NCBI GenBank assembly: GCA_038087875.1
Contig: CM075989.1
Coordinates: 10,602,001 to 10,666,000, forward strand
Direction: 5' to 3'
Length of the DNA stretch: 64,000 nucleotides
From: Malacoraja senta
Taxonomy: Eukaryota
The notes below the pieces were generated by a model. The model worked only from the letters and a program-made list of their open reading frames with translations. It was not told the DNA's origin and ran no database searches. This document shows positions 4,704-60,215 of this stretch, in pieces; position 1 is the stretch's first letter; the number at the start of each line of letters is the position of its first letter. The position numbers were made by a program, and so were the translations under genes.

Positions 4704-5597
4704 CGCGTTAGCTGTGAATTGTTGACTCGGATCCAGAATATGGACGGGTAAATGTGGTTGGTTACCAAGTCAGGCTTATGAGTTATGTATTATTTGCTGT
4801 AAATGGGAGGAAATTTCCATGTAAATCAATTGGTGACTTTAAAAGAAATCAGTGACATTTTAAACAAAGACGTTGCTTTATGCTTCAACCATTCAAAGCA
4901 AACCTTTATCCCCAAATCATCATTCTAAAGATATAGTTGCAAATAAGTAGGCAGAACGTCTAATCGCCAAGAACGGAAAATTGGGTGATGATGTGAAATA
5001 AATAAAAGTTGTGAGGTTTAAAGAGTTTGATGCTGTTAGGTTGTGTTCCTTATCTGGAAGGAACAACAGTAATATATCCAACAAAGCATCAACATATCTG
5101 AGACAGGTAGAAATTAATTCACTTAAAGGAATCTTCGGAATTCTCCATTTTGGAAGCATCATTGACTTTGTTCAAACTATAATCAGTAGATGTTTTGGTA
5201 CAAGGAAATGAAGCAAGAGTGTAGTGTGGAAAGTGTGTGTGGAGAGTTCTTTTAAGTTCTGACAACCTTTTCCATTGTTCAATGTGGCAAGAATGCAGAT
5301 GTTTGTAGCTTTTCTCTTGGCTCCTGTGGGTAGCTGCACATGCCCAGTTTTAGCAGGCCCGGTTATACTTGGAAACGAGCATGATGCCCTTCCTCATTTA
5401 TTTTTCACTAAATTTAGGATTTTCTGTGGGCATCTGATTGGGATTTATCAAAATGTGCAGTGCATGTTTAATCTAGTGTCCACTCCAGGCCGACAACCCC
5501 ATCACTGATCACATTCAGTCAGCTCTGTTGGACAGATTACATCGTTCGACTGCCTGACACAATGTGGTGGCCTAATTCTGCTCCAGCTCCAGCTCCA

Positions 5598-6485
5598 TCT
5601 ACACGTTTGCACATGATACCGCTGCAGTGGGCCGGACGTTGAACAATGATAACACAGAGCACAGGAAGGAGATAGAGAGCTTATAACAAAATGTCAACCC
5701 AACAACCTCTGCTCCAAAGTCAGCAAGATGAAGGAGATAGCTATTGACTTCAGGATGTGAGGTGGAGTACAAGCCCCAATCAGCATCAATAGTGGAGATG
5801 GTGGAGAGCTTCAAGTTCCCCGGCATGAATATCATCAACAATTTGTCCTGAACCAACCATGTTGAAGCTATGGCTAAGAAAGCACACCAACGCCTCTACT
5901 TCCTTGAAGATTGAGGTTTGTAATGTATCTAATAAACTCTTACTAACTTCGATAGATGTATCATAGAAAACCATCTTGTCGGGATCCATCACAGCTTGCC
6001 TTGCAACTGCTCTGCTCAAGACCACAATACATTACAGAGAGTTGATGATGTGGCCCAATCCATCACACAGACAAGTCTTACCCCATTGATTCCATCTAAA
6101 GTTCACTCTGCCTTGGGAAAGCAGCCAACAATAACAAGGACCAATTTCATCCCGTTGATTCCTTCTTCTCCCCTCTCCTGCCAGGAAGAAGACACAAATG
6201 CTTGAATTCAGCAGCAGCTTTTTTCCCGCTGTTATCAAAGTAAGCTACGATGTCGTCCTGACACTCCGAAGTACCTCAGTGCAAACCTTGCGCTTTTTCT
6301 ATGTAACTAATGCTATAATGCTGTAACAGTATATTTTGCACCCTGGTATTTTTCTCCCTGCACTAACTGTTGTACGTGTCCATGGTTTGATTGTACTCAA
6401 GTGTAGCATGATTTGAGAGGATAGCACGCAAATAATGTTTTGTTACTGTGTCTTGGTTCACATGATAATAATAAACAAATACCAA
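5598..6485 (+). mobile_element. Decayed Rex1/Babar-type LINE 3' part
   Basis: Degenerate F(A)DDT..VG..NND..YR.E coding remnant at ~5600, KKAHQRLYFL at ~5875, and family 3' UTR. Confidence 0.75.
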
Positions 6486-7259
6486 TTTCAATACAAGACT
6501 CCTGAAACAGACTGCCCATTCCATATTCTGTCATGGGAAGAGATGACTGAGCTGATAGAGGAACAGTTTGAAAAATGTTCTTAAAGCATTGTTGAAAATT
6601 TGCAGTATGTCCTCTAACTCTTGGGATATTCTTGGCCCATGCCTGGTTAAATCTGAGAAGAGGCATTTGGGATGGCACAGAGAGCTTTGAGTCTGCATGT
6701 CGGGAGCACATAGAAGTCAAAGTAAGTGGTGGAAGGAAAATACCTCATAACATCCTTCCCCCCTCCACCCCCCTCTCCCCACCCTCCCCCTCACCACCAC
6801 CCCCAATTCCCTCCCTCCTGCCCCATCTGTCAATGACTCTGGAGTTCACAAACTGGCCTCATCAGCCTTCTCAGAACCAACAAGATTGGAGGGGATGCGA
6901 GTTATCCTTCCTCTTGAGGGAAGGGAGCCGGGGGAGGAGGAGAAGAAGGGGAGATGAAGAAGAAGAAGGAGAACATGGGGGGGGGGGGGGAGGGGCATGC
7001 GGTGGAGGACAACAACATCAAAACCAGTAGTTCTGGATCTGTGATGCAGAGATAGGTGTTAAAATCCTATTACATATGCTAAAGAATTTAAATTCATGTA
7101 ATTAAATAAACCAAGAGTTCAATAAAAAAGCTGTCTTGAAGCTTCCACTTTTAGCCTTAGGACAAGCAGAACCAGAGTGGAAGCAATTCATCCTCGATTC
7201 TGTGCAGTGGCCTGTGCAGTGAGAAGGAGCAGATGGTGGTTCAGCAGTTAGTGGTGCTA

Positions 7260-9887: not shown

Positions 9888-10087
9888 NNNNNNNNNNNNN
9901 NNNNNNNNNNNNNNNNNNNNNNNNNNNNNNNNNNNNNNNNNNNNNNNNNNNNNNNNNNNNNNNNNNNNNNNNNNNNNNNNNNNNNNNNNNNNNNNNNNNN
10001 NNNNNNNNNNNNNNNNNNNNNNNNNNNNNNNNNNNNNNNNNNNNNNNNNNNNNNNNNNNNNNNNNNNNNNNNNNNNNNNNNNNNNNN
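9888..10087. other. Assembly gap (200 N)
   Basis: Run of exactly 200 N. Confidence 1.
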
Positions 10088-10186: not shown

Positions 10187-12873
10187 ACATAGAAACATAG
10201 AAACATAGAAAATAGGTGCAGGAGTAGGCCATTCGGCCCTTCGAGCCTGCACCGCCATTTGATATGATCATGGCTGATCATCCAACTCAGTATCCCATCC
10301 CTGCCGTCTCTTCATACCCCCTGATCCCTTTAGCCACAAGGGCCACATCTAACTCCCTCTTAAATATAGCCAATGAACTGACCTCAACTACCTTCTGTGG
10401 CAGAGAATTCCACAGATTCACCACTCTCTGTGTAAAAAATGATTTTCTCATCTCGGTCCTAAAAGTCTTCCCTCTTATCCTTAAACTGTGACCCCTAGTT
10501 CTGGACTTCCCCAACATCGGGAATAATCTTCCTGCATCTAGCCTGTCCAACCCCTTAAGAATTTTGTAAGTTTCTATAAGATCCCCCCTCAATCTTCTAA
10601 ATTCTAGCGTGTACAAGCCGAGTCTATCCAGTCTTTCTTCATATGAAATCCTGCCATCCCAGGAATGAGTCTGATGAACCTTCTCTGTACTCCCTCTATG
10701 GCAAGTATGTCTTTCCTCAGATTAGGAGACCAAAACTGTACGCAATACTCCAGGTGTGGTCTCACCAAGACCCTGTACAACTGCAGTAGAACCTCCCTGC
10801 TCTTATACTCAAATCCTTTTGCTATGAATGCTAACATACCATTCGCTTTCTTCACTGCCTGCTGCACCTGCATGCCTACTTTCAATGACTGGTGTACCAT
10901 GATACCCAGGTCTCGTTGCATCTCCCCTTTTCCTAATCGGCCACCATTTAGATAATAGTCTACTTTCCTGTTTTTCCACCAAAGTGGATAACCTCGCATT
11001 TATCCACATTAGACTGCATCTGCCATGCATTTGCCCACTCACCCAACCTATCCAAGTCACCTTGCAGCCTCCTAGCATCCTCCTCACAGCTAACACTGCC
11101 CCCCAGCTTCGTGTCATCCGCAAACTTGGAGATGTTGCATTCAATTCCCTCATCCAGATCATTAATATATATTGTAAATAGCTGGGGTCCCAGCACTGAG
11201 CCTTGCGGTACCCCACTAGTCACTGCCTGCCATTCTGAAAAGGACCCGTTTACTCCTACTCTTTGCTTCCTGTCTGCCAGCCAGTTCTGTATCCACATCA
11301 ATACTGAACCCCCAATACCGTGTGCTTTAAGTTTGCATACTAATCTCTTATGTGGGACCTTGTCAAAAGCCTTCTGAAAGTCCAGATATAACACATCCAC
11401 TGGTTCTCCCTTATCCACTCTACTAGTTACATCCTCGAAAAATTCTATAAGATTCGTCAGACATGATTTACCTTTCATAAATCCATGCTGACTTTGTCCA
11501 ATGAATTCACCACTTTCCAAATGTGCTGCTATCCCATCTTTAATAACTGACTCCAGAATTTTCCCCACTACCGATGTTAGACTAACTGGTCTGTAATTCC
11601 CTGTTTTCTCTCTCCCTCCCTTTTTAAAAAGTGGGGTTACATTAGCTACCCTCCAGTCCTCAGGAACTATTCCAGAATCTAAAGAGTTTAGAAAAATTAT
11701 CACTAATGCATCCACTATTTCTGTGGATACTTCCTTAAGTACTCTGGGATGCAACTTATCTGGCCCTGGAGATTTATCGGCCTTTAATCCATTCAATTTA
11801 CCTAACACCACTTCCCGGCTAACCTGGATTTCACTCACTTCCTCCATCTCATTTAACCCCCGGTCCCTTGCTATTTCCGGCAGATTATTTATGTCTTCCT
11901 TAGTGAAGACAGAACCAAAGTAGTTATTCAATTGGTCTGCCATGTCCTTGTTCCCCATGATCAATTCGCCTGTTTCTGACTGCAAGGGACCTACATTTGT
12001 TTTAACTAATCTTTTCCTCTTCACATATCTATAAAAACATTTGCAGTCAGTTTTTATGTTCCCTGCCAGTTTTCTTTCATAATCTATTTTCCCTTTCCTA
12101 ATTAAGCCTTTTGTCCTTCTCTGCTGGACTCTGAATTTCTCCCAGTCCTCTGGTAGGCTGCTTTTTCTGGCTAATTTGTACGCTTCATCTTTTGTTTTGA
12201 TACTATCCATGATTTCCCTTGTTATCCACGGATGCACTACCTTCCCCGATTTATTCTTTTGCCAAACTGGGATGAACAATTGTTGTAGTTCATCCATGCA
12301 GTTTTTAAATGCCTTCCATTGCATATCCACCGTCAACCCTTTAAGAATCATTTGCCAGTCTATCTTGGCCAATTCACGTCTCATACCCTCAAAGTCACCT
12401 TTCTTTAAGTTCAGGACCCTTGTTTCTGAATTAACAATGTCACTCTCCATCCTAATGAAGAACTCAACCATATTATGGTCACTCTTGCCCAAGGGGCCAC
12501 GCACAACAAGACTGCTAACTAACCCTTCCTCATTACTCAATACCCAGTCTAGAATAGCCTGCTCTCTCGTTGGTTCCTCTACATGTTGGTTTAGAAAACT
12601 ATCCCGCATACATTCCAAGAAATCCTCTTCCTCAGCACCCCTGCCAATTTGATTCACCCAATCTATATGTAGATTGAAGTCACCCATTATAATTGTTTTA
12701 CCTTTGTTGCACGCATTCCTAATTTCCTGTATGATGCCATCCCCAACTCCACTACTACTGTTAGGTGGCCTGTACACAACTCCCACTAGCGTTTTCTGCC
12801 CCTTAGTGTTTCGCAGCTCTACCCATATCGATTCCACATCCTCCAAGCTAATGTCCTTCCTTTCTATTGCGTT
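10187..12873 (-). mobile_element. Young 5'-truncated CR1 LINE (APE C-half plus RT), inserted in an older CR1 remnant
   Basis: 628-aa ORF continued by two frameshifted segments (10604-10999, 10287-10616); 3' UTR and (ctatgttt)n tail at 10187-10210. Confidence 0.97.
10960..12846 (-). pseudogene. CR1 ORF2 fragment: apurinic endonuclease and reverse transcriptase
   Basis: Motifs VYRPP, MGDFN, SDHN (APE); [43 protein letters not shown] (RT). Lacks the N-terminus; frameshifts near 10970 and 10645. Confidence 0.95.
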
Positions 12874-14526
12874 GCGTTCTTTATCATCTGGTACTCCTCA
12901 TTGGACAAGGAGATTAGACGAGCTCCTTAGAGTATAGAAGATGATGGACTGATCCAATTGAAGAGTTTAATTTGGGTAAAATAAAGAAGATAGGGTAATT
13001 ATTTCCCCTGGTGGGAGACCCAGAATAAGAGAGATAACACCTTCAAACAAGAGCCAGGTCACTTGGGGCTGATGTCAACAACTATTTCTTTAAACGGTGG
13101 TCAAAATTTGGAACACTTTTCTCTCAAGAACTGTTTGAAGTTCGAGCATGTTTTTTTTGGTCAGTTGGCAATCTTAAAATAGAGATTTAAAAAATTTATG
13201 TTGGGCAAGGGAATTATGGATTAAGCAACTGTGAAACATCTGGAACTGAGATATAAATCAGCTCGGATGAAACGGAATGGTGGAACACTCGAGTTAGTGA
13301 ATGGTCTCATCCCGTCCCTATGATCACTGAAATGAAACAGGACAGTAAATCATGACCTTAGTGCAGAAGGAATGGGGATCCTGCGGCAGAGGGCAGTTTT
13401 AAATTTAGATACAATGCAGGCGTTGTGGATATAAACTACCGCATGCATCACCCAACATGACCTTAAAGTTACCTGCAACTCCACAATCTTCTGGGCATCC
13501 ATCATCCCATTCTCCTTAACCTTCACCATGTTATCACATGAACAGCTAAGTAATAAAAGACAGAGTGCACTCCTGCAAAGCCCCCAGGAGCTCCCGTGTT
13601 TCAAGCACTAATCCTATGGTGGAAGCCTTTACTATTTAATTGCTGACCAAATACGGTGCCAAAGTTGGATGAGAGAAGCATCAAATGAAAAACGTCGATC
13701 AAAGCAGGGAGGTGTAAAAGAGTTCTGAATATCTGAACCTCACACTCATTGCCTTGTAATTCCCTCCAGGAACCAGTTTCAAAAATTCCGTGGCTCTCCG
13801 TGGGAATGTGAGGAATGTGTCTATCAGCTCCATCCGCCAATATTTGATTTAGATACAATGATCGACACAAGCAAAGTATCTGTTTTGAACAAATACCAGG
13901 CCACCGGCAGTAAGGTAACACTGGCTTCAATTTGCCCCTGACATACCACAGCATGCAGAGTAGAAATGTAATAAATATTTAAATTATTTAACAATAAGGA
14001 ACTTATGCAGTTCAAGAATGTATCAATTACACAAACTGGGACTGTATTCTATGGAATTTAAAAAGGTGCAGGGGATGTGACAGAAGTTTTCAGAATTTAA
14101 GCAGAAGTCCGGTGTTTTGCTGGTTGGAAATTTAGGATTTGGAGGCAGAATCTAAACGTTTGAGGCAAGTCCTCTCAAGGATAAAGGCAGGAAGCATTCC
14201 ACATGGTGGTTGGAATTTAGAATGTCCCTCTGGAAAAGACAATTGACACTGTATCAGTTATTCATTTTAAGTATGTGATTGAGAAATGTTGTTAAACAAA
14301 GAGAGATGGGGAGGTCAGAGGTTATTTATGATCTCATTGAATAGTGTTTAGTTCAGTTCAGTTCAGTTTTATTTGTCATATGTAGGTTAACACAGGGTCA
14401 ACGGTAAAATGATATGTTTTTGACAAGACAACGGGTCACCTCAGCAATGATATTACATGGATAAGACACAGCGCGGAAACAGGCCCTTCAGCCCTGAAAA
14501 CTATCCTGTGATTGAATGCAAATAAA

Positions 14527-14592
14527 GGCCCCAAAGCAGAAGCGTCCACGTCGCGGGGCTGGAAACTGGGAGTATCCTGAGCTAATTCTGCT
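14527..14592 (+). ncRNA. HDV-like (CPEB3-like) self-cleaving ribozyme
   Basis: P1 GGCCCC/GGGGCT with G.U at position 1; P2 AGCAGAA/TTCTGCT; P3 GCG/CGC; L3 TCCACGT; P1.1 CC/GG; P4 GGGA-GTA-TCCT; J4/2 CTAA (catalytic C14582). Confidence 0.9.
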
Positions 14593-14720
14593 ACCACTAT
14601 CATCTATTCCGACAAGTGGTGGCTTCCACTGATTGTCGCCAGAAGCTTGCGTCTTTTTCGGGACGGACGTTGACAGCGAGGCCAACATCTGTAACAAGAA
14701 GGACACGAAAAGAAGAAGAA
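14527..14720 (+). mobile_element. HDV-ribozyme-headed short retroposon, family A copy 1
   Basis: Same 5' start and body as 37828-38014(-); (GAA)n tail; degenerate TSD gaatgcaaataaa (14514-14526) / gaatgaaaacaaa (14721-14733). Confidence 0.88.
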
Positions 14721-15589
14721 GAATGAAAACAAATTCCGTTCTTCCCTCTAATCTTGAACCAAACTCCTTATATTCTTAGTACAATCAACAAGGTGTGTTT
14801 CATAATTCAGCCTTGATGTTGGCTGTGTCAATGCTCCCTGATTTACCCTGGGTACCTTCTCTAATCCTGCTGCTCACCAGCTCTCCAAATCAATGGGGTG
14901 AGTGCTAAAATCATGTTCCACACAGCGTATGGCAACAGGAAGTTTAGCTATCAATCATCCAGTTGAAGGTCAGCTTCACCAGGGAGCATTCCTGACTCTG
15001 GGAATGTTGGTTAGGAATTCAGGCTTGGAGCTCAACCAGACAGACATTTTCTAACCTATGTATTCTTATCAACCGTCATCACCTTCCCATTCATTACAGG
15101 GACAACCCTAACATAGACAGACCCTATCATGGGGCTGACGCTAGTATTCATTATAGAATCATGGGCACATTTAGAGTCATACAGCATGGAAACAGACTCT
15201 TCAGCCCAGACTCTTTAGTCTCACCTGCCTGTGTTTGGCCCATTTCCCTCTAAATATTTCCTGTCCAAATATCTGGAAGCAATTTAGGCCATTGTGCATG
15301 CTGTATCGTCCACTACTGAGTCATTCCTCATGGACCTGTAATCTCTCTCGCTTCAGGTTTATGGGATTCCTTTCTGAATTTAGCATTTGAATCTTCTTCC
15401 AAACCTTTCAGCAACATATTCCAAATCTCACCTTCTTCCTTTTTAGGAAATCGATTGGTCAAGTTACCTCTTGGGATTCTCCCACATGTCACCTTAAATG
15501 GTTCTATCCATTTTATTGCAAGTTGAGATTTAGGACACAGTCTCGAGATGAGTTGCTGAATTGGTTAGAAAATGTTTTAGGATGTTATA

Positions 15590-25863: not shown

Positions 25864-26041
25864 GTGTAGGAAGGAACTGAAAATGCTAGTTAACACCGAA
25901 GATAGACACAAAATGGTGGAGTAACTCAGCGGGTCAGGCAGCATCTTTGGAGAAAAGAATGACTGACCCTGAAACATCACCTATTCCAGTTATCCAGAGA
26001 TGCTGCCTGACCCGCTGAGTTACTCCAGCATCTTGTGTCTA
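25864..26041. mobile_element. Palindromic Penelope-derived short element
   Basis: gacacaaaatggtggagtaactcagcgggtcaggcagcatc ... gatgctgcctgacccgctgagttactccagcatcttgtgtc. Confidence 0.8.
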
Positions 26042-37583: not shown

Positions 37584-37827
37584 TAGGCGACTTAGGACAA
37601 ATTGGGCTGAAGGGGCTGTTTCTGTGTTATTTAGCTCTATGATTCTAACCCCTAGTGCTGAATGAACTGTTACTCAGGGTGTCTAGAGAAAAAGGTGAAC
37701 AAAATTCAGAAACCTGTAGAGGCTGGAAATTTGAAATAAAAGCAGAAAATGCACGAAACACTCAACAGATCAGACGACATCTGTGGAGAGAGAAATAGTT
37801 AATGTTTCTGGTCAAAGTCCCTTTGTC

Positions 37828-38014
37828 TTCTTCTTTCGTGTCCATGTTTCCAATGTTGACATTGCTGTGATCGTCCGTCCTGAAAAGGACGCAAGCTTCC
37901 GGCGACAATCAGTGGGAGCCATCACTTGAGGCAATAGTTAATGGTGGTAGCAGAATTAGCTCGGGATACTTCCAGTTACCAGCCCTGCGACCTGGACGTT
38001 TCTGCTATGGGGCC
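37828..38014 (-). mobile_element. HDV-ribozyme-headed short retroposon, family A copy 2
   Basis: Perfect 12-bp TSD agtccctttgtc (37816-37827 / 38015-38026); ribozyme at 38014-37948; GAA tail. Confidence 0.9.
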
Positions 38015-39699
38015 AGTCCCTTTGTCAGAAGTGGTTTATGTATACAGCCAGGCAAAGGAAAGTGGAGTTAGTGTGGACGAGTGAAAGATGAAGCCGGGTC
38101 ATGGTACCTAATGACCTGCCCTTTCTGCCTTGGGTCTCCTGCTGTGATATTCTTACACACCGCCATTGTTTTCATAAGTAGGTTTCTAGCTGTCAGATAA
38201 TATATATTACTCCCTCTCCTGTTTTATTCCCAAACTTCTCTTTTTTGTCGTAACTAGAAAGAAAAGCTTTCATTGACAGTCTTAAACCAGAGATTACATT
38301 TCAAGGAAAACAATAACTAGACATTGCTGACTAGTAGCTTATTTGTTCTGCATTAGTTCTTCAGGGCACTGCCGTACCAGGGTGTGGGACAAACCACCGT
38401 CTTGTTTCAGAGTGCTCTGCCTAAAGCTGAGCACAATAAACACACAGAGAAATCGATTCATTCCAGCTTTGCCCCTGACCTTGACCCTTGCGACAGGCTC
38501 CACCTCCTTGTGAATTATCTGATTGCTCAATGCAGGTAAGCTCCAGAGCCGGTGGAAACATGTGCAAAGCATTGCTATGTGAGTTGAACGTGGTCCGTTC
38601 ACATGGAAAGCAAATAGCAGTTGGCAATGTATGTTAAGCATCACTCAGCATATCTCCAGTCGTTGGAACTCTGTGCTTGTCTATACATGAGGTGGAAACT
38701 AAAATGAGCCTTGCTTCATGATTGAAGCGCATGCCTTCTAATCGAAAGCTCACGTTGGTATCACAGCTCAATCATCTTTCTAATCTGTCCTTTCTCACAA
38801 GATCACGCAATAAAATAGGAGCAGGAGTAGGCCACGCAGCCCCACAAGCCCAGCCCACCGTTCAATATGATCATGAATGATCTACCCCAGCATCAACTCC
38901 TCCTCTGTGCCAGTTCCACATAGGCCTCAATTCCTCAAACTTTCAAATATTTATTTATCTTCACCTTAATTCTATCCATCCTCTGAGGCAGAGATTCACC
39001 AATCTCTGACAGAAGCAATTTCACCGGTCATCATATATCAATATTGTAATTCAGGGGTAGATTTTCTCAATTTAGATTACTTTAGTTTAGAGATACAGCG
39101 CAGAAACAAGTCCTTCAGAAGAGAGGGCGATGGACCTGAAAGCATTTGTTTCCCCTTCCACAGATGCTGCCTGACCAGCTGAGTGTTTCCAACATTTGCT
39201 TTTCTTGTTGCACGTGGGATTGACCTGAATAAGAACCATATTGGATGGAGATTAACATAGAAATGTTACATTGCTTCTGTTAAAATCCAGTCTGTGCTAT
39301 TTAATGCAAGAGTTAACCAGTTAGTTCAAAGTGTTAGTACATCCATAACTCGAGGAAATTTAGTGTGTGTAAATGAACTTCGCTGATACGCACCTGGTGT
39401 GTTATACTAAAATGTGCATTAACTCAGACAAAACCTGTTGCAGTGTTTCTTTTGAAAATAATTCTGTAAGAAATTCAAGGAAAATCTTTGTATTTTCCTC
39501 TAAACCTGATCGGACTGAAGCTTTCAAGTAATTGAGATAAACTAACAGGGTGGATGGTGTACTGTATACTCGTGTAAGGGTACCTGTAAGAACTGAGTGT
39601 AGCATGAGATATGACCTTGACTTTGATGCACCCTCATGCCAGACAGTCATTTAGTTGAAAGTTACCTCCTTCAGTAACAGAGGCCCAGGTGATGTTGGT

Positions 39700-50000: not shown

Positions 50001-50311
50001 CTTACTTACTTACTTACTGCCGATTATGCCTCTTGGCATGTAGGGCAGCAACAAAGGTCCTCCACTCAGTAGTGTTGATTCCTTCAGTTGCTGTTTCTGT
50101 AACATATTTGTTTTACGAGACAGGGTTGTTAGCCCTGTGCTCAACCTCCAACCTGGAGGACCAGTGGATCACTCTTCGTCTCGCCTCTACCCTTCGACCT
50201 GTCCAGCATGGGAGACCCTAACAGGAGACGAATCTCCCGCTGGCATAGCTCTAGGGGTCACTGAGACACACAAGCTCCCCGACCACGACAAGGTTGCAAT
50301 CCAACGGGGAG
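50001..50311 (-). mobile_element. RTE-derived bipartite non-autonomous retroposon (family C) with an HDV-like 5' fold
   Basis: Perfect TSD cacccactaga (49990-50000 / 50312-50322); (TAAG)n tail; 3' end reads WRTFVAALHA like RTE ORF termini; 5' motif ACCTTGTCGTGGT typical of RTE 5' UTRs. Confidence 0.88.
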
Positions 50312-52370: not shown

Positions 52371-52610
52371 ACTTTTTCACACAGAGAGTTGTGAGTCTGT
52401 GGAATTCTCTGCCTCAGAGGGCGGTGGAGGCCAGTTCTCTGGATACTTTCAAGAGAGAGCTTGATAGGGCTCTTAAAGATAGCGGAGTCATGGGATATGG
52501 GGAGAAGGCAGGAACGGGGTACTGATTGGGGATGATCAGCCATGATCACATTGAATGGCGGTGCTGGCTCGAAGGGCCGAATGGCCTACTCCTGCACCTA
52601 TTGTCTATTG
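52371..52610 (+). mobile_element. CR1 3' end
   Basis: FFTQRVVSLWNSLPQ...GYGEKAGTGY. Confidence 0.9.
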
Positions 52611-52891
52611 ACCTGCTTCTGTACTGTATGATTCTTCATTATTACTGAATGAAGAATCATCCAGCACAGAAGGAGGATATTTTGCTGACCATACCTCTGC
52701 TGGGACTTTAAGGAGCCATTCAATTTGTCTCCTTCCTCTGCTATTTTAATCTGCAAATTTATTTTTGATTATTTGTTCAAGCAGAGGACGGGGATGGTTT
52801 CATGCAAACTCAGCTAATCCAGTCCGTCTGCAAACCTCAGAACTAACTCGCCTGATCGTGCTGAAGGCTTGCAACGGCGCTATCGAGATAT

Positions 52892-59875: not shown

Positions 59876-60215
59876 TAGAAACAAGGAACTGCAGATGCCG
59901 ATTCACAAGAAAGGATATAGTAACTCAGCAGGTCAGGCAGCATCTGTGGAGAACATGGACAGGTGACATTTTGGGTCAGGACTCCTCTTTGAACTCATTA
60001 TGGACGGGGGGTGGGGGGGGAAGAAAGCTGGGAGAGAGAGAGACAGGGACCCCAAGACCCTTCCAGGTGAGACAAACATTGACATGCACCTTTTCAAACC
60101 TTGTCTACTGTATTGGGTGCAGTCATGTCTCTCCCAGCTTTCTACCCCCCCCCCCCCCCCACAATGAGTCTGAAGAAGGACCCTGACCCGAAACATCACC
60201 TATCCATGTTCTTCT
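59876..60215. mobile_element. Palindromic PLE derivative retaining a GIY-YIG coding remnant
   Basis: Inverted arms enclose PFQVRQTLTCTFSNLVYCIGC (60050-60120). Confidence 0.82.

Follow-up and report, generated by a model that had tools for sequence, protein, structure and literature searches.

A 64,000-nt stretch of the genome of the skate Malacoraja senta (the window) contains two copies of a short retroposon, which we refer to as family A. The element begins at the first nucleotide of a ribozyme that shares its sequence family with the mammalian CPEB3 ribozyme. Comparison with LINEs from other organisms makes it probable that family A is a short non-autonomous retroposon that arose by internal deletion of a LINE, has its 5′ end trimmed by the ribozyme, and is copied by the enzyme of the LINE. 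The skate and mammalian ribozymes are, in addition, probably homologous. No self-cleaving RNA of mammals has been studied more closely than the CPEB3 ribozyme, for which a link to memory has been reported. We lean towards the further reading that this ribozyme was domesticated from the 5′ head of an ancient group of LINEs whose products are an apurinic-type endonuclease (APE) and a reverse transcriptase (RT); the group would still exist, its ribozyme conserved, in cartilaginous fishes, in ray-finned fishes and in one or more other eukaryotes. If this is true, the mobile copies are the first outgroups for the CPEB3 ribozyme, for which the literature gives none.

A helix-by-helix parse of the first copy, A1, revealed that positions 14527–14592 of the forward strand constitute a complete 66-nt HDV-like fold in which every helix pairs (Table 1). 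The G at the cleavage site, G14527, closes P1 as a G·U wobble with U14560, and C14582, which we take to be the catalytic residue from what is known of the HDV and CPEB3 ribozymes, aligns to the C of CGAA in the consensus of the Rfam family RF00622 (CPEB3_ribozyme). The first-pass annotation of this DNA had described the helices, the G1·U wobble and the catalytic C as intact, and our own parse of A1 agrees with it on every one of these points. In a cmscan search of Rfam, RF00622 matched positions 14515–14592(+) with a score of 43.0 bits (E = 3.4e-8), which lies above its gathering score of 35 bits, so that the alignment to the Rfam CPEB3 family that the annotation had suggested as a check turned out in favour of membership. 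RF00622 was the sole Rfam family to reach its gathering score within the window, where no other HDV-like Rfam family was detected even at E values up to 5. Over the positions outside P1 and P4, A1 is identical to the RF00622 consensus at 31 of 35. The annotation had also given block identities to CPEB3 of 19/20 and 11/12; we obtained the same counts against the Rfam consensus, which served as the reference in place of a human sequence. (Note that the nested minimum-free-energy fold of the 66 nt was no better than those of shuffled sequences, with a z score of +0.91; nested folding is uninformative for a double pseudoknot, so this outcome was to be expected, and it lends the fold no support.) HDV-like ribozymes are known to act at LINE 5′ ends, and by analogy with them A1 RNA would be expected to cleave itself 5′ of G1; the annotation predicted that the two-pair P1.1 would make cleavage faster than in CPEB3.

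Table 1 Features of the family A copies and of related LINEs. Positions are those of the window unless a contig is named.
Feature	Position	Strand	Description
Ribozyme A1, P1	14527–14532 with 14555–14560	+	GGCCCC/GGGGCU; 6 pairs including the G1·U wobble
Ribozyme A1, J1/2		+	AA
Ribozyme A1, P2	14535–14541 with 14586–14592	+	AGCAGAA/UUCUGCU; 7/7 pairs
Ribozyme A1, P3	14542–14544 with 14552–14554	+	GCG/CGC
Ribozyme A1, L3	14545–14551	+	UCCACGU
Ribozyme A1, P1.1	C14546–C14547 with G14561–G14562	+	GG of J1/4 able to pair with CC of L3; two pairs
Ribozyme A1, P4	14563–14581	+	19 nt
Ribozyme A1, predicted catalytic C	14582	+	First base of J4/2 (CUAA), directly after P4
Family A, copy A1	14527–14720	+	194 nt; begins at ribozyme G1
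A1, 5′ target-site duplication	14514–14526	+	GAATGCAAATAAA; ends directly at G1
A1, 3′ target-site duplication	14721–14733	+	GAATGAAAACAAA; 11/13 positions match GAATGCAAATAAA
A1, body assigned to LINE 5′UTR	14593–14700	+	ACCAC motif, hairpin, remnant of start-codon region
A1, ACCAC motif	14593–14597	+	Directly after ribozyme
A1, hairpin in body	14650–14654 with 14661–14665	+	Present in both copies
A1, 3′ end	14701–14720	+	LINE motif GGACACGAAA, then (GAA)n tail; same motif ends LINEs L019 and L020
Family A, copy A2	38014–37827	−	188 nt; identity to A1 across the full element, 84%
A2, ribozyme	38014–37949	−	One P1 pair and one P3 pair broken
A2, ACCAC motif	37948–37944	−	
A2, ATG remnant	37862–37860	−	
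A2, 5′ target-site duplication	38015–38025	−	ACAAAGGGACT; perfect 11 bp; abuts G1
A2, 3′ target-site duplication	37816–37826	−	Perfect 11-bp repeat of ACAAAGGGACT
L002, ACCAC motif	L002 2272–2277		
L020, ACCAC motif	L020 2468–2473		
L026, ACCAC motif	L026 688–683	−	
L019, LINE 3′ end motif	L019 5406–5426		Directly after stop codon; then target-site duplication
L020, LINE 3′ end motif	L020 5453–5468		Followed directly by target-site duplication

The 26-nt core of the ribozyme occurs twice in the window, whereas shuffled sequences give an expectation of zero. Homology between A1 and the second copy, A2, starts exactly at G1 and stops in the (GAA)n tail; because the two copies share these boundaries and have target-site duplications that abut G1, we consider both to be retroposed copies whose 5′ end lies at the predicted cleavage site. 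The end coordinate of 14720 proposed earlier for A1 is right, since the 3′ target-site duplication begins at 14721. The ribozyme of A2 scores 26.9 bits on RF00622, below the threshold of 35. Stop codons are present in all three sense-strand frames of the 194-nt element, which has no coding capacity, and a stop-free antisense frame that we translated and used to search other assemblies for copies gave no match. Family A may be old and no longer active, as the two copies from this one genome are only 84% identical.

Both ends of family A are shared with LINEs, which in each case come from organisms other than the skate. The 5′ end has its counterpart in L026 (CBDHDV010000085.1), a contig that we obtained from a scan of prokaryotic genomes and that is binned as a Rubritalea sp. 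MAG. Because this contig has a GC content of 41% and a CpG observed/expected ratio of 0.37, it looks like eukaryotic contamination, possibly fish-host DNA, in a bacterial MAG. It carries, in order, a CPEB3-type ribozyme, ACCACC, a 5′UTR, an ATG and an intact 178-aa APE N-terminus that is 50–53% identical to the APEs of other LINEs. The ribozyme has a decayed P1 and scores 48.5 bits on our own model, R1, and the 5′UTR through the start codon is 78% identical to positions 14620–14674 and 37858–37922 of the window. At the opposite end, the sequence GGACACGAAA(GAA)n with which family A terminates is the end motif, GGACACGAA(GAA)n, of the LINEs L019 and L020, the former being flanked by the duplication CGATCTGTA. 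As both ends match this group of LINEs, family A appears to consist of the first ~170 nt and the last ~20 nt of the LINE.

The first-pass annotation had referred to family A as a SINE. The element is indeed a retroposon, and its first nucleotide is G1 of an intact ribozyme; the classification itself does not hold, for there is no tRNA-, 5S- or 7SL-derived head and the ends are shared with a LINE. In particular, ARAGORN predicted no tRNA gene at positions 14300–14900, and even with an E value cut-off of 5 a search of Rfam matched the element to none of tRNA, 5S and 7SL, so that it is not a Pol III SINE in the usual sense. Judged from its sequence, family A is instead an internal-deletion derivative of a ~3.05-kb LINE that encodes an endonuclease and a reverse transcriptase, and its architecture is that of the R2 SIDEs (PMC3774820) and of NARTc (PMC3383444).

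To find relatives of the ribozyme, JGI metagenome contigs were scanned with an exact pattern of the P2–P3–L3 core. The scan yielded 6 contigs that represent two loci of one metagenome eukaryote. At both loci the ribozyme heads score 55.6–63.2 bits on RF00622, combine the mammalian P1 (GGGGGCC/GGCCCCU) with the L3 and J4/2 of the skate, and are followed by a decayed ORF with endonuclease (PF14529) and reverse transcriptase (PF00078) domains. The ORFs that neighbour these LINEs match no Pfam family, another retroelement ORF gave a weak hint of Cnidaria in a protein atlas, and a search of one of the LINEs (L008) for its 3′ end and target-site duplication produced only a chance-level 10-mer and no tail. 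Homologues of the metagenome endonuclease protein led to the teleost Aldrovandia affinis (GCA_029706075.1), in which a head on L016 scores 70.8 bits on RF00622 and is followed, after ~45 nt, by the ATG with which an APE-RT ORF opens. Relative to the mammalian consensus, this head has two compensatory changes in P1 and two in P2 (GGUAGAA/UUCUACC); its J4/2 (CGAA) and the start of its L3 (UUCAC) are both as in mammals, and its 18-nt P4 is closed by CAG/CUG like the mammalian P4. L020, also from A. affinis, is a full-length LINE copy of 3,066 nt whose first nucleotide is the G of the ribozyme and which has TACAGTCAA at its flanks. A further CPEB3-type head, on L018, scores 50.6 bits. As far as these sequences indicate, the CPEB3 family is the standard 5′ head of this group of LINEs. 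(Note that the clade labels "jockey" and "R1" in the source names of these LINEs are automatic.)

Upstream of the APE/RT homologues L010–L014, L017, L019, L021 and L022 we found no convincing ribozyme; the region upstream of L021 reached only 14.7 bits, and L019 is 5′-truncated at its ATG. A shorter CPEB3-type variant is present at positions 5292–5356(−) of L015 (42.2 bits on RF00622), with P2 UGCAAAA/UUUUGCA, a P4 of 4 A-U pairs and a long J4/2; the eukaryotic DNA around it is AT-rich, with no recognisable ORF adjoining. Six of the nine family members, drawn from different hosts, have ACCAC directly after the last base of P2, and this motif could mark what to seek downstream of the mammalian ribozyme.

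Several other features of the window were considered. An autonomous LINE partner for family A was sought in the 64 kb and was not found; an RT fragment at 10972–11280(−) was rejected as a candidate, being a different RT that is 29% identical to the RT of the group. Family C (50001–50311), described earlier as derived by deletion from an RTE element and as having an HDV-like head with a long P4, shows no similarity to family A and has no HDV-like match in Rfam at E values up to 5. Hairpin-like stretches at 60006–60159, 52610–52678 and 25920–26025 gave sub-threshold matches to miRNA precursors on both strands and are probably remnants of inverted-repeat transposons. Positions 9888–10087 are a run of 200 N.

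Covariation was assessed in an alignment of nine sequences that was built with R1, a model that encodes P1 and P3 only. Standard pairs occupied 96.7% of the cells of this alignment, compared with 38–55% when the 3′ partners were slid by 1–3 columns, and nine pairs had changed on both sides (5 in P1, 3 in P2 and 1 in P3). P2 was paired in 100% of cells and, since it is absent from R1, the way in which the alignment was made does not account for its covariation. That compensatory changes have preserved the helices in hosts distant from one another implies that the fold is under selection. Such selection argues against the idea that the head, though ribozyme-like, is defunct or has no role in mobility, and that the end at G1 reflects a transcription start or the end of the RT template. 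Also at odds with that idea are the retention of every pair and of the catalytic C in A1, and the fact that A1, A2 and the full-length L020 all have an element end at G1. We regard it as very improbable, even though the heads of A2, L026 and L020 have broken P1 pairs, the cleavage of A1 is a prediction, and L1Tc/NARTc illustrates that a ribozyme and a promoter can occupy the same first 77 nt (PMC3383444).

The fold and its family membership, the covariation, the element boundaries and the 5′ and 3′ ends shared with LINEs are evident in the sequences and underlie the mechanism that we propose. The parent would be a LINE of ~3.05 kb with a single ORF encoding APE and RT, from which family A would have kept the 66-nt ribozyme, part of the 5′UTR, the start-codon region and GGACACGAAA with (GAA)n. 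Having no promoter of its own, the element would be transcribed inside a longer host transcript; the nested double pseudoknot would then fold and cut immediately 5′ of G1, giving the RNA an exact 5′ end. The LINE reverse transcriptase would recognise the 3′ end of this RNA, and target-primed reverse transcription into a new site would generate the target-site duplications. Co-transcription and use of the LINE's enzyme are what HDV-like ribozymes at other LINE 5′ ends would lead one to expect.

The ribozyme of family A is a member of the CPEB3 sequence family and not an orthologue of the CPEB3 ribozyme: it is present in a non-mammalian genome as two dispersed copies with target-site duplications, whereas the CPEB3 ribozyme is a single intronic copy. 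Only about six nucleotides are invariant in the HDV-like fold (PMC8256844), so the identity at 31 of 35 positions is not forced by structure. By the same token, much of the similarity is confined to a few short helices, and the skate ribozyme could in principle be an independent HDV-like ribozyme whose P2, P3 and L3 match those of CPEB3 by chance, perhaps as a core that folds well. J4/2 CUAA and L3 UC..CGU are general HDV-like features, as judged from the RF02682 consensus, and a relaxed motif scan of IMG/VR returned one real ribozyme, on the 132-kb viral contig L042, that belongs to RF02682 (46.2 bits) and shares P2 AGCAGAA/UUCUGC, P3 GCG/CGC and L3 UCCGCGU (positions 6238–6168). In 596 Gb of prokaryotic genomes we obtained 16 motif matches, approximately the number expected by chance, 15 of which were discarded as bare local matches of 17–32 nt without a full-length ribozyme. 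These results suggest that the P2/P3 core can arise independently, but rarely, and that limited convergence occurs. Wide recurrence of P2/P3 in unrelated HDV-like ribozymes, which the annotation had named as the observation that would undermine kinship with CPEB3, was not what we found: the single instance in IMG/VR and the 596 Gb was that on L042.

Indeed, the phage case emerged only when IMG/VR and the 596 Gb of prokaryotic genomes were searched with exactly this motif, and the models tell the two ribozymes apart, as the one on L042 fails an E value of 0.1 on the CPEB3 model and the skate copy fails an E value of 5 on every other HDV-like model. Moreover, skate and mammal are connected by a graded series of animal ribozymes: the metagenome heads join the mammalian P1 to the skate L3 and J4/2, and the head from A. 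affinis resembles that of mammals in the start of its L3, in its J4/2 and in its CAG/CUG-closed, 18-nt P4. P2 varies within the family by compensatory change, which indicates that its sequence is not fixed by function. We therefore regard chance resemblance as improbable and favour homology. The suggestion that family A is a mobile relative of the CPEB3 ribozyme has gained strength, given that autonomous APE-RT LINEs in a teleost and in other eukaryotes have heads even closer to CPEB3 than that of the skate.

Contig L042 had features of its own. The ribozyme, of the HDV-F-prausnitzii type (6168–6238(−)), is closely followed by a ribosome-binding site and an ATG. Some 770 nt upstream of it on the same strand, a stretch of 137 nt (7004–7140(−)) matches positions 2115–2256 of bacterial 23S rRNA with 65.8 bits, and the 219-aa ORF between the two matches no Pfam family.

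If the ribozymes are homologous, descent might nonetheless have been reversed or indirect, with a host gene or an RNA agent as the source from which the LINE ancestor captured its ribozyme, or with the mammalian copy having come from something other than a LINE. Heads of this type are, however, found on LINEs of cartilaginous fish, of a teleost and of at least one more eukaryote, and the fact that they are shared although the APEs are only ~50% identical suggests a long association between ribozyme and LINE. The CPEB3 ribozyme, for its part, is single copy and has been reported from mammals only (PMC8233481), which likewise speaks against such a route. Against this stand the absence of any demonstrated LINE sequence beside the mammalian ribozyme and a debate in which the origin of HDV-type ribozymes in RNA agents is treated as open (PMC8256844). 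Taken together, these points make reversed or indirect descent unlikely in our view, and domestication of a LINE head the reading that we prefer. Relatives at the heads of fish LINEs would give the CPEB3 ribozyme a testable origin, namely a LINE head captured in an intron, and would be relevant to a long-standing proposal that connects HDV-type ribozymes with host transcriptomes. An earlier published suggestion of a retrotransposon origin is possible. What is new here is the sequence kinship with CPEB3 and the group of LINEs that carries such heads, a ribozyme-trimmed 5′ end being already known from R2, RTE and L1Tc. Among the papers that our literature search covered, we found no report of HDV-like ribozymes in LINEs of this kind from teleosts or cartilaginous fishes.

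Compared with known systems, the ribozyme of family A is closest to the CPEB3 ribozyme (RF00622), with which it shares the fold, an identical 7-bp P2 and an identical 3-bp P3, and from which its L3 differs at one base. It differs further in that its 6-bp P1 has another sequence, its P4 is unrelated, its P1.1 is able to form two C-G pairs, and its J4/2 is CUAA rather than CGAA; in addition, family A is a mobile, multi-copy element of a cartilaginous fish whose copies have target-site duplications, as opposed to the single intronic copy of mammals. The bacterial and phage ribozymes of RF02682 have the same fold, and one phage member shares the P2/P3/L3 core; that ribozyme has a different P1 and P4 and sits between phage genes, and the RF02682 and RF00622 models do not cross-match.

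Non-LTR retrotransposons with 5′ HDV-like ribozymes, including R2, RTE and others, have been described (Eickbush 2010; Ruminski 2011). As in family A, the ribozyme of these heads lies at the exact 5′ end, just upstream of the start of the ORF, and is thought to process co-transcripts; unlike family A, none of the heads described there is reported to share sequence with CPEB3. In Trypanosoma cruzi, the LINE L1Tc and its short non-autonomous partner NARTc share a 5′ HDV-like ribozyme (PMC3383444), although the 77 nt of L1Tc double as an internal promoter, and both the host group and the ribozyme sequence differ from those of family A. The R2 SIDEs (short internally deleted elements) of Drosophila keep the 5′ HDV-like ribozyme of the LINE together with the 3′ end that is recognised by its enzyme (PMC3774820) and, like family A, are non-autonomous elements in which a LINE 5′ ribozyme is joined to a LINE 3′ end. 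R2 and its SIDEs are site-specific in 28S rDNA and depend on a restriction-like endonuclease, whereas family A is dispersed and derived from an APE-type LINE, has a 3′ end of only ~20 nt, and begins with a ribozyme whose sequence is unrelated to that of R2.
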